A stretch of DNA of 64,000 nucleotides from Auanema rhodensis (taxonomy: Eukaryota > Animalia > Nematoda): the NCBI GenBank assembly GCA_964057225.1, contig OZ059900.1:13950001-14014000 (forward strand). The letters are read 5' to 3'. The translations under genes and the position numbers were made by a program. How positions within the stretch are numbered: position 1 is the first letter of the stretch; the number at the start of each line of letters is the position of its first letter. Below the pieces are notes generated by a model. It made no database searches, was not told the origin of the DNA, and saw nothing but the letters and a program-made list of their open reading frames with translations. Below, piece after piece: positions 16,301-18,960 of this stretch.

Positions 16301-18960
16301 ACCTGTCCAAATGTTCCCTTTCCCAAAAACTCCAATACTTCATAATGGCTGCCATAAGGCGAGGCCAAAACTTCGTTTTTGATCAATTGGTATTCACCTT
16401 CATTAGAACGCCCTCTGCTTGGTTGCTTAGACAATGATACCTGTAAAATATTTTTGCAAAAACTTTAAATTGATTCAATCTCACCTCTGAACTGGCCTGC
16501 TTGTGACGTTTACTACTACAGCACATTGGCTGAGCAAATTGTCTAGAGGAATTCGCCTTCGTAACTAATGTTCTCGGCTGGGGAATTCCTATTCGCGCAA
16601 GGTTCACAGCTGCAACTGGTTGCGGAATTTGGTGAAGAGATGCATCTATAGAAATAGGAGCAGCCGGAAAAAGTGGAGAAGGGTGTGGTACAGTCATTGG
16701 TAAAATTTGAGACGCATATGGCACTGGAATCGATGAAGTATTGCCTGTGGTTGCCATTCCAACGTCAACAGTACGAGCAGGCTCCGAAGGCACAGCGAAT
16801 ACTGTTGGTTCTAATACAGGATTTGATGATTCAACTGGCTCAATTTTGGGGCTTCGAAGAGTAATCGATAATGTTGAATTTTGCGAAGTTCCTCCTTCTA
16901 TTTGTGGTCCAGATCCTTCCGGTAATTGACTTTCAGAGTTATTTCCATTATTAGAATCAGTGTTGTTTTCATCATCCTCGTCTCCAGTTTCATTTTCATG
17001 CTCATTTCCGTCATCTCCATCTGTATCACTAGTTTCATCATCATTACTAACTGCCGTAGAATCCTCAACATCTGATGGCTCTTCCAGTTCATCAGGATTC
17101 TCACTGAGGAAAAAGATGATGTCGTCTTCTGTTAAAGTTTTTCTTACAAAGTCCGATAACGGAGAGTCGCTTCTTGGATACAACATTTTAGTTGCCTTGA
17201 AAAACCGGAACAGCTTTATTTTCAGTTTGTGTTCGATGCGAGGCAGTTTATTCAGCATCACCAGAGCATCAGCAGTAATGGAGGCAGTTGCAGGAGCTTC
17301 AGGGCTAGAAAACAAATGTTGTTGACCCAAAGACTTTTCAGCTGAACTTTGTGAAAGTGTTTGTGGCATGTAAGTTAAAGTATCAGTACCAGCTTTTGAA
17401 GAAACTTTAATCTGACGGTGCTGAGCATAATTTTCACAAATTTGTTCAGCTAGCTTATTGAGCAGCAATCGAACAGTGCCATGCAATTCACGTACATGTA
17501 CACTATATTTAACTTCTTCTTCATTCGCGAATAAAAATCCGGAATTATCTCTCAGAATCCTTTTCAGAAACTCTCGTGTCAGCTTCGGCCAAGACTTCAA
17601 CGAAGTGAGTATTGGAGGAGTAGCAGCATACTTTATGAAGTAAAGAAATGTGGCGCACGTCAAATCAAAAGGATCCATTTCATTTGGATCTTTTTTATTC
17701 TGCTTTATGAGGCGTTTGTAAACTTTTGGAAGTAAAGAGCCCAATGCGTTCATTGCTGTTCTCATAAATAGAACCATCTCCTCATTAGTTGCTGCTGGAA
17801 AATTGTTTCCAGGATTTCTTAGAACCAATCTTCTTTTCATCATATCTTGAGCGCTGGGAAGAATTGGGGTAAGCTCATATCCTTCCGGTGTTTGCTTATA
17901 AATGAAAGCATGTTTCTCTCGCAAGAAATTTTGTGCAATATTAGATGGCTCGTTGACTAATAATAATGGAAATTGTTCAATTTTCCACTTTCCAATTAGT
18001 TTGATGTTGGGAATAGACGTCATTTTTTTCGGGTTTTGTGTGGGGAAACCTGTACCCCTTGGAGGCGGATATATATCTGAACATGCTGCTTTTCTTGTAG
18101 ACAGCTAAAATACTTTTTTATAAAAACGAAAAAAAATTGTGAACGTACCAACGACGTCTTAGATGAAGTTGCCCCACTTGATTCAAGCCCACTTACGCGT
18201 TTCATTGGTGAAACAGTTGATACGTTTGAGCAGTTTGCTATACTTGAATTGTTTATAATCTCAGATGACCGAGACGCATTAGATTGATTTGTAGACTGAT
18301 CAACAACAATAGGTGAAGAAGATGATGTCACTTTCTCCAGTGTACCATCACTATTCCGAGTTTTATCAATATCGTTTTTGGTACTGGTTCCCTTGAGTTC
18401 TTTTGCTGGGACTGAATCCAGACTTTGCTTCTCGCTTTTGCCAGTAGTCTGTAATTATTCAAAAATCCTATAGCAGACTTCATTAATAAGGTTACCTCTT
18501 CTATAGGAACAATAGTTTTCAATCGTTTATTTTTGCTTTCCAGAGATGTTGATATTTGATTATTAGATGACTAAAATATATGGCAATATATTATGCAACT
18601 TTGATAAAAGTTATAAAGAATTTATATTTTTTCTAGTAAATTACAGATCTAAACATATTTGATATTTAGTTTTGTTGCTTAAAAATGAAAAAAAACTATT
18701 ATGTAGCTTACAAAACTTTTGATAAAGCCAAATATCAATTAAAAATATTGCAAAATTTGCTAGTCTTTTGAAGTTACAAAAGATTTTTTCAAGAAGTCAA
18801 ACGACGCAAGAGTGATAGAATAAACAAGAGGTTTTAAAATTTCAATAACAATAATGTATAAAAAGATATGATTTAAGAAATTCATAGATATTTAACTTAC
18901 ATCAACCGAGCTTTCAACACTTTGGTCAATTAATTTCCTCTTTCTAGTTTCATCATCCAT
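13328..18960 (-). CDS. hpk-1: Homeodomain-interacting protein kinase (HIPK) with greatly extended N- and C-termini
   Basis: [98 protein letters not shown]. In-frame 5' exons: 18960-18901, 18570-18496, 18448-18149, 18104-16485, 16440 onward. Last exon 14263-13328. Confidence 0.93.
13925..14110 (-). repeat. 18-bp coding tandem repeat, (AEAQAR)n, in the last exon of hpk-1
   Basis: About 10 perfect or degenerate units: [67 protein letters not shown]. Confidence 0.9.

Follow-up and report, generated by a model that had tools for sequence, protein, structure and literature searches.

What appears, from its exon sequences, to be the single HIPK (hpk-1-type) gene of the Auanema rhodensis genome contains, directly upstream of its kinase exons, a stop-free exon of 540 codons (exon 4, E4) that has no detectable relative in the available data. 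We consider E4 to be a genuine coding exon that is probably spliced constitutively and that represents this lineage's version of the long, fast-evolving N-terminus of HIPK proteins. The non-kinase regions of HIPKs decide their partners and their location. In C. elegans, stress responses, proteostasis, and lifespan are all under HIPK control (PMC4726358, PMC5658188, PMC10393298). If E4 is indeed a lineage-restricted and, as it seems, structured addition to a worm's only HIPK, it would be a natural experiment in the way a conserved kinase acquires new targeting and would show an orphan domain residing within an essential signaling gene. At present, it is a well-supported exon without known relatives, a situation often met at the variable termini of these kinases, and a HIPK with a lineage-restricted orphan stretch at its N-terminus is a modest lineage-specific curiosity.

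Gene model and splicing of exon 4

All coordinates refer to the window, that is, the whole 64,000-nt stretch of DNA that was analyzed, and all searches were run per exon or per exon piece. Two single exons of the gene match Pfam Pkinase (E values of 3.9e-9 and 7.2e-5), and HIPK-type motifs, namely, the GEYQL... kinase start and the activation-loop tyrosine, can be read in exons 5, 9, and 10. The 64 residues encoded by exon 7 (E7) align at 77-82% identity with the HIPK fragments that match them best in the protein collection, 82% being the top value; a lower-ranked match at 74% (P0073) was named “homeodomain interacting protein kinase” by JGI. Because E7 has one strong match in the worm's 181-Mb assembly, with the next best matches, at 49% and 35% identity, belonging to other kinases, the gene appears to be the only HIPK of this genome. 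The gene model, which was built by sequence reading, comprises the following parts (a slash marks a splice site; L005 and L006 are HIPK loci from the survey described below).

18901..18960, minus strand: exon 1, 20 codons, putative; begins with ATG and contains RKRK (ETRKRK); placed by sequence reading and the splice motif GAT/gtaagt
18496..18570, minus strand: exon 2, 25 codons; acceptor ttttag/TCA, donor GAG/gtaacc, phase 0-0
18149..18448, minus strand: exon 3, 100 codons, Ser-rich and of low complexity; acceptor attacag/ACT, donor TTG/gtacgt, phase 0-0
18105..18148, minus strand: intron upstream of E4, 44 nt, gtacgt...tattttag; in the size class of the kinase-domain introns (44-47 nt)
16485..18104, minus strand: E4, 1620 nt or 540 codons; open frame with a chance probability of ~5e-20, in phase with both neighbors
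16441..16484, minus strand: intron downstream of E4, 44 nt, gtgaga...ttttacag
16303..16440, minus strand: exon 5, conserved motif and start of the kinase domain; 86% identity to L006 (over 35 residues) and to L005 (over 28 residues)
14725..16256, minus strand: exons 6 to 14, the remaining HIPK kinase domain (exons 6 to 13) and the first post-kinase exon (exon 14), from the Pkinase matches, HIPK identity, and exon table
13331..14290, minus strand: large 3' open frame of 320 codons that contains a hexapeptide repeat of Ala, Gln, Glu, and Arg; assigned as the last coding exon

All exons are open and in phase, and when strung together in order they give 1120 codons with 0 stops. Exons 1 to 3 measure 60, 75, and 300 nt, and the nine kinase-domain exons (E5 to E13) measure 74-192 nt each. 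The gene structure is unusually uniform: every intron except the first is 44-47 nt long, and exons 1 to 8 (positions 18960-15773) all have phase 0-0 and lengths divisible by three.

E4 sits between the Ser-rich exon 3 and exon 5, the first kinase exon, and is in phase with both according to the exon lengths. Given the base composition of the window (31.6% G+C), 7.9% of the codons on the minus strand should be stops, which gives E4 the chance probability listed above. Its acceptor (tattttag/CTG at position 18104) and its strong donor (GAG/gtgaga at position 16485) lie exactly at the two ends of the frame. Thus, the description given in the initial annotation, a single 540-codon exon of phase 0-0 in a gene with short kinase exons, was borne out. 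The N-terminus preceding the kinase domain comes to ~717 amino acids (aa) with E4 and ~177 aa without it, close to the ~715 and ~175 aa reported there.

Because both introns flanking E4 are of the minimal 44-nt length, like the constitutive introns of the kinase domain, constitutive inclusion of the exon is favored and, judged from these signals, seems the most likely mode of splicing. Regulated exons of C. elegans tend to be flanked by longer and conserved introns. It has to be considered whether E4 is instead an alternative cassette exon, such that the gene produces both isoforms that contain the orphan module and isoforms that lack it, with the module conferring conditional targeting. The prerequisite for this is present, since skipping the 1620-nt exon of phase 0-0 would preserve the frame and leave the short N-terminus given above. 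However, this symmetry is shared by exons 1 to 8 and hence does not discriminate, both flanking introns are minimal and the sequence around E4 lacks repeats and hairpins, and with E4 skipped the protein would lose the low-complexity linker found immediately before the kinase in L005 and L006. We therefore regard a cassette exon as unlikely.

Slightly less likely again is the possibility that E4 begins at the ATG at position 18023 and is either an alternative first exon or a nested gene of its own, not joined to exons 1 to 3 or not joined to the kinase. Such an in-frame ATG does exist 27 codons into E4, a separate open reading frame of 546 codons runs from 18023 to 16383, and a nematode acceptor can also serve trans-splicing. 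Against this, the donor GAG/gtgaga and its 44-nt intron tie E4 in phase to the kinase exon, and the unspliced open reading frame would enter exon 5 for 57 nt in another frame; likewise, the sequence 5' of the ATG stays open as far as the acceptor, from which the donor of exon 3 is just 44 nt away. We infer from these signals that E4 is included in the mRNA as part of the constitutive HIPK transcript.

Composition of exon 4 and the search for relatives

The translation of E4 starts with a basic, Pro-rich lead-in (residues 1-27), which is followed by three blocks.

17085..18023, minus strand: orphan module, residues 28-340; predicted to start with beta-hairpins and continue in long helices; loop rich in Ser, Thr, and Gln near residues 235-275
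16905..17120, minus strand: SIM-like core DDIIFFLSE (residues 329-337), then a D/E-rich tract to ~residue 400, from composition and the flanks of the core
16485..16904, minus strand: Pro/Ser/Thr-rich linker, residues 401-540, ending in KRHKQASSE, from composition

The residues F, W, Y, I, L, V, M, and C make up 35.5% of residues 28-340, and D and E make up 38% of residues 341-400; together with the Pro/Ser/Thr-rich residues 400-540, this is the composition that had been claimed for the exon. Among all exons of the gene, the core at residues 327-342 is the only one that is hydrophobic and has acidic or Ser residues on its flanks; it fits a loose SIM pattern that allows Phe and fails the strict V/I/L pattern. 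By position and composition, the linker is the counterpart of the low-complexity pre-kinase stretch in L005 and L006. No internal or tandem repeats were found in a sequence scan of the exon.

AlphaFold2 without an alignment gave pLDDT values of 36.8 (residues 28-345) and 39.9 (residues 28-244), which are too low to show a fold. Both runs placed hairpins near model residues 39-53 and helices near 80-108, 118-132, 147-159, and 175-202 (pLDDT of 37-40), and a helix-rich, perhaps folded, state of the module is suggested by this agreement at most. A crude run length from FoldIndex plus entropy (95 in E4 and ≤67 in the others) separates E4 weakly and was not relied on. The absence of a confident AlphaFold2 fold would also fit a recently decayed or nonfunctional frame that is translated as disordered filler without a specific role. 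This reading is the least probable of those considered here: a frame of this length in AT-rich DNA needs selection or a very recent origin from coding sequence, and its hydrophobic content and strong helix propensity set E4 apart from other HIPKs, whose N-termini are of low complexity.

The initial annotation described a domain of unrecognized type and proposed a search for its free-standing paralogs, and our results agree with the former and supply the latter. (i) Pfam scans of whole E4 and three pieces of it at E ≤ 10 gave no match except a subthreshold one to PAGK in the linker. (ii) PDB sequences gave only chance matches (E > 0.1). (iii) HMMER searches against 1.84 billion protein representatives revealed no genuine relative of E4. 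The one match obtained (P0001, E value of 6.5e-4) was rejected as spurious, being a 91-aa tandem-repeat protein that matches one 45-aa stretch five times. (iv) A scan of the JGI metagenomes with the E4 domain and a word search with residues 1-345 among proteins of 297-945 aa found nothing. (v) An exact look-up of the 546-aa open reading frame found nothing on record in a collection without near genomes. (vi) In the worm's own 181-Mb genome, E4 matches itself alone, at E ≤ 0.01 as well as at E ≤ 10, and is thus single-copy.

The protein and contig collections searched do not contain this genome and its nearest kin, and the most conserved kinase exon finds nothing closer there than 82% identity. 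As a control, the 196 C-terminal residues of this gene were put through the word search, which again returned nothing; this search can therefore not tell a missing relative from one that has diverged too far or lies beyond its length limits. The lack of E4 relatives may in part be due to rapid divergence of all regions of the gene outside the kinase, as well as to these length limits. Accordingly, residues 28-340 appear to have no relative that is detectable in the available data, which is distinct from being absent from sister species.

N-termini of other HIPK loci and the origin of exon 4

For comparison, 87 HIPK loci were collected, 80 from metagenomes by means of an alignment (A1) of nematode-like E7 fragments and 7 from contig look-ups. 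These loci served solely for bulk comparison with the exons of the worm. Neither exons 1 to 3, nor E4, nor the C-terminal exons have a match in any of the 87 loci, L005 and L006 included; for some of these loci, the contig covers only a few hundred nucleotides 5' of the kinase exons. The loci with the closest kinase-exon matches (L002-L004) are little informative on the N-terminus, their contigs ending 0.5-1 kb upstream. Within these bounds, the E4 domain is not common to other HIPKs.

The HIPK family (C. elegans HPK-1, Drosophila Hipk, and vertebrate HIPK1-4) shares with the worm gene the kinase motifs and a long, variable N-terminus before the kinase. It differs in that the worm N-terminus of ~717 aa includes a hydrophobic, helix-rich stretch of ~310 aa that has no counterpart in the HIPK loci examined. 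Across the survey, HIPK N-termini vary very widely in length: the open frame immediately preceding the first kinase exon, which could be located in 70 loci, spans 14-591 aa; it is often 150-420 aa, and frames of 150-590 aa are common. The hydrophobic share of these upstream frames is 13-30% in most of the 70 loci, compared with the 35.5% of residues 28-340 of E4. In three related environmental HIPKs (L055, L063, and L064, at ~530-2250 each), an open frame of ~590 aa without a Pfam domain abuts the kinase start.

The closest loci are L005 and L006, which have the highest identity in the first kinase exons (86% in k1 and 80-81% in k3). Like the worm gene, both have low-complexity sequence that leads into ...EGEYQ. 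L006:250-1899, a transcript-like metagenome contig that encodes a nematode-like HIPK, has ~370 residues of Ser-rich, low-complexity sequence between the first in-frame Met (MPNSTDRHYRKRKP...) and the beginning of the kinase, and no part of this N-terminus resembles residues 1-400 of E4. It does have an RKRK near its N-terminus, similar to exon 1 of the worm gene (ETRKRK). L005, which is genomic, has a low-complexity exon ending in ...STEGEYQ; an intron directly follows EGEYQ, whereas the worm gene has none there.

Because a long open frame beside the kinase start is normal in HIPK genes, the size and intronlessness of E4 are no pointer to retro-insertion. The argument made earlier from the oddness of one big intronless exon is accordingly weak. 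What is unusual in E4 is the hydrophobic, helix-rich content of residues 28-340. With regard to the proposal that a retro- or transposon-derived domain had been fused into the kinase, the part concerning an unrecognized stretch stands, while the proposed origin found no backing, as follows.

In a search of ESM Atlas features with residues 28-345, clusters of NDC10_II, GCR1_C, and DUF3435 ranked on top at 0.90-0.91. This likeness to NDC10_II/Crypton-type domains, which derive from tyrosine recombinases, is one of language-model features of these residues only. Together with the lack of introns and of relatives in this stretch, it would fit a module acquired by capture of a retrocopy or by domestication of a transposon protein, e.g., the NDC10_II-like DNA-binding part of a Crypton, inserted in frame into the N-terminal exon of the HIPK gene. 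However, the lead is weak (recognition value of 1698 versus 2300, with 128-146 of 256 features shared), and a query with the sub-part of residues 100-240 returned unrelated unnamed bacterial clusters at 0.85, with NDC10_II not repeated. The PF16787 profile gave nothing in the whole genome, E4 included, and PF16787, PF12550, and PF11917 gave no match on the E4 pieces at E ≤ 10. The NDC10_II/Crypton lead was rejected as unreproduced. Furthermore, (i) no parent or sister copy of E4 exists in the 181-Mb genome at E ≤ 10, (ii) a search around E4 for flanking direct or inverted repeats, a target-site duplication, or terminal repeats gave only chance-level short repeats, and (iii) the codon composition is native, with a GC3 of 0.30 in E4 and 0.25-0.37 in the kinase and last exons. 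A capture of this kind is thus improbable, and E4 is better understood as the lineage's own version of a variable HIPK N-terminus.

Possible role of exon 4 and neighboring sequences

Read from the N-terminus, the predicted order is an orphan module of ~310 residues, hydrophobic and helix-rich, the SIM-like core, the D/E tract, the Pro/Ser/Thr linker, and the kinase start (GEYQL...YEVLEFLG). The orphan module, SIM-like core, and acidic tract probably constitute together a docking or targeting region ahead of the flexible linker and the kinase, which would recruit partners to the kinase or direct the kinase to sites in the nucleus. Histones and other basic partners commonly bind to acidic tracts, a hydrophobic core with a following acidic run is a SUMO-binding arrangement, and in vertebrates HIPK2 is known to rely on a SIM for nuclear-body targeting. 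The acidic tract of E4 would be suited to basic partners of this sort, and the hydrophobic core with its acidic run would be suited to SUMO; binding of SUMO by the core is conceivable from its sequence. It is very improbable, in our estimate, that the full scenario holds, in which one nematode lineage evolved or captured a folded domain of ~310 residues, possibly out of a DNA-binding protein of a mobile element that is no longer recognizable, and in which this domain, fused to the only HIPK along with a core that binds SUMO and an acidic tract that binds histones, retargets this conserved stress and longevity kinase to chromatin.

The layout of E4 is reminiscent of DAXX, a partner of HIPK that has an acidic tract, a Ser/Pro/Thr-rich region, and SIMs. 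A helical domain of DAXX is described in a review (PMC6735914). The order of blocks is like that of E4 (helix-rich, SIM-like core, D/E tract, S/P/T-rich), a likeness that concerns layout only and is of a common kind. The Daxx family was absent from the Pfam scans of E4 and its pieces at E ≤ 10. A relationship of E4 to DAXX was rejected, since the likeness of layout comes without sequence similarity.

Elsewhere in the window, three further features were observed. The last coding exon of the gene (13331-14290), for which a word search found no relative, contains at 13907-14098 (minus strand) an 18-nt tandem repeat in ~9 copies that encodes hexapeptides of the (A-E-A-Q-A-R) type; this run is flanked by more Ala/Gln-rich sequence. 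Between hpk-1 and the next gene, at ~10004-12170, open reading frames of 72, 67, and 86 aa are mirror-paired on opposite strands (10004-10833 versus 11341-12170), and their identical lengths suggest a large inverted duplication. Finally, a 125-codon frame at 22333-22707 (minus strand) shows a weak match to Sarcoglycan_2_C (E value of 6e-4, below the cut-off) and is probably an exon of the upstream neighboring gene.
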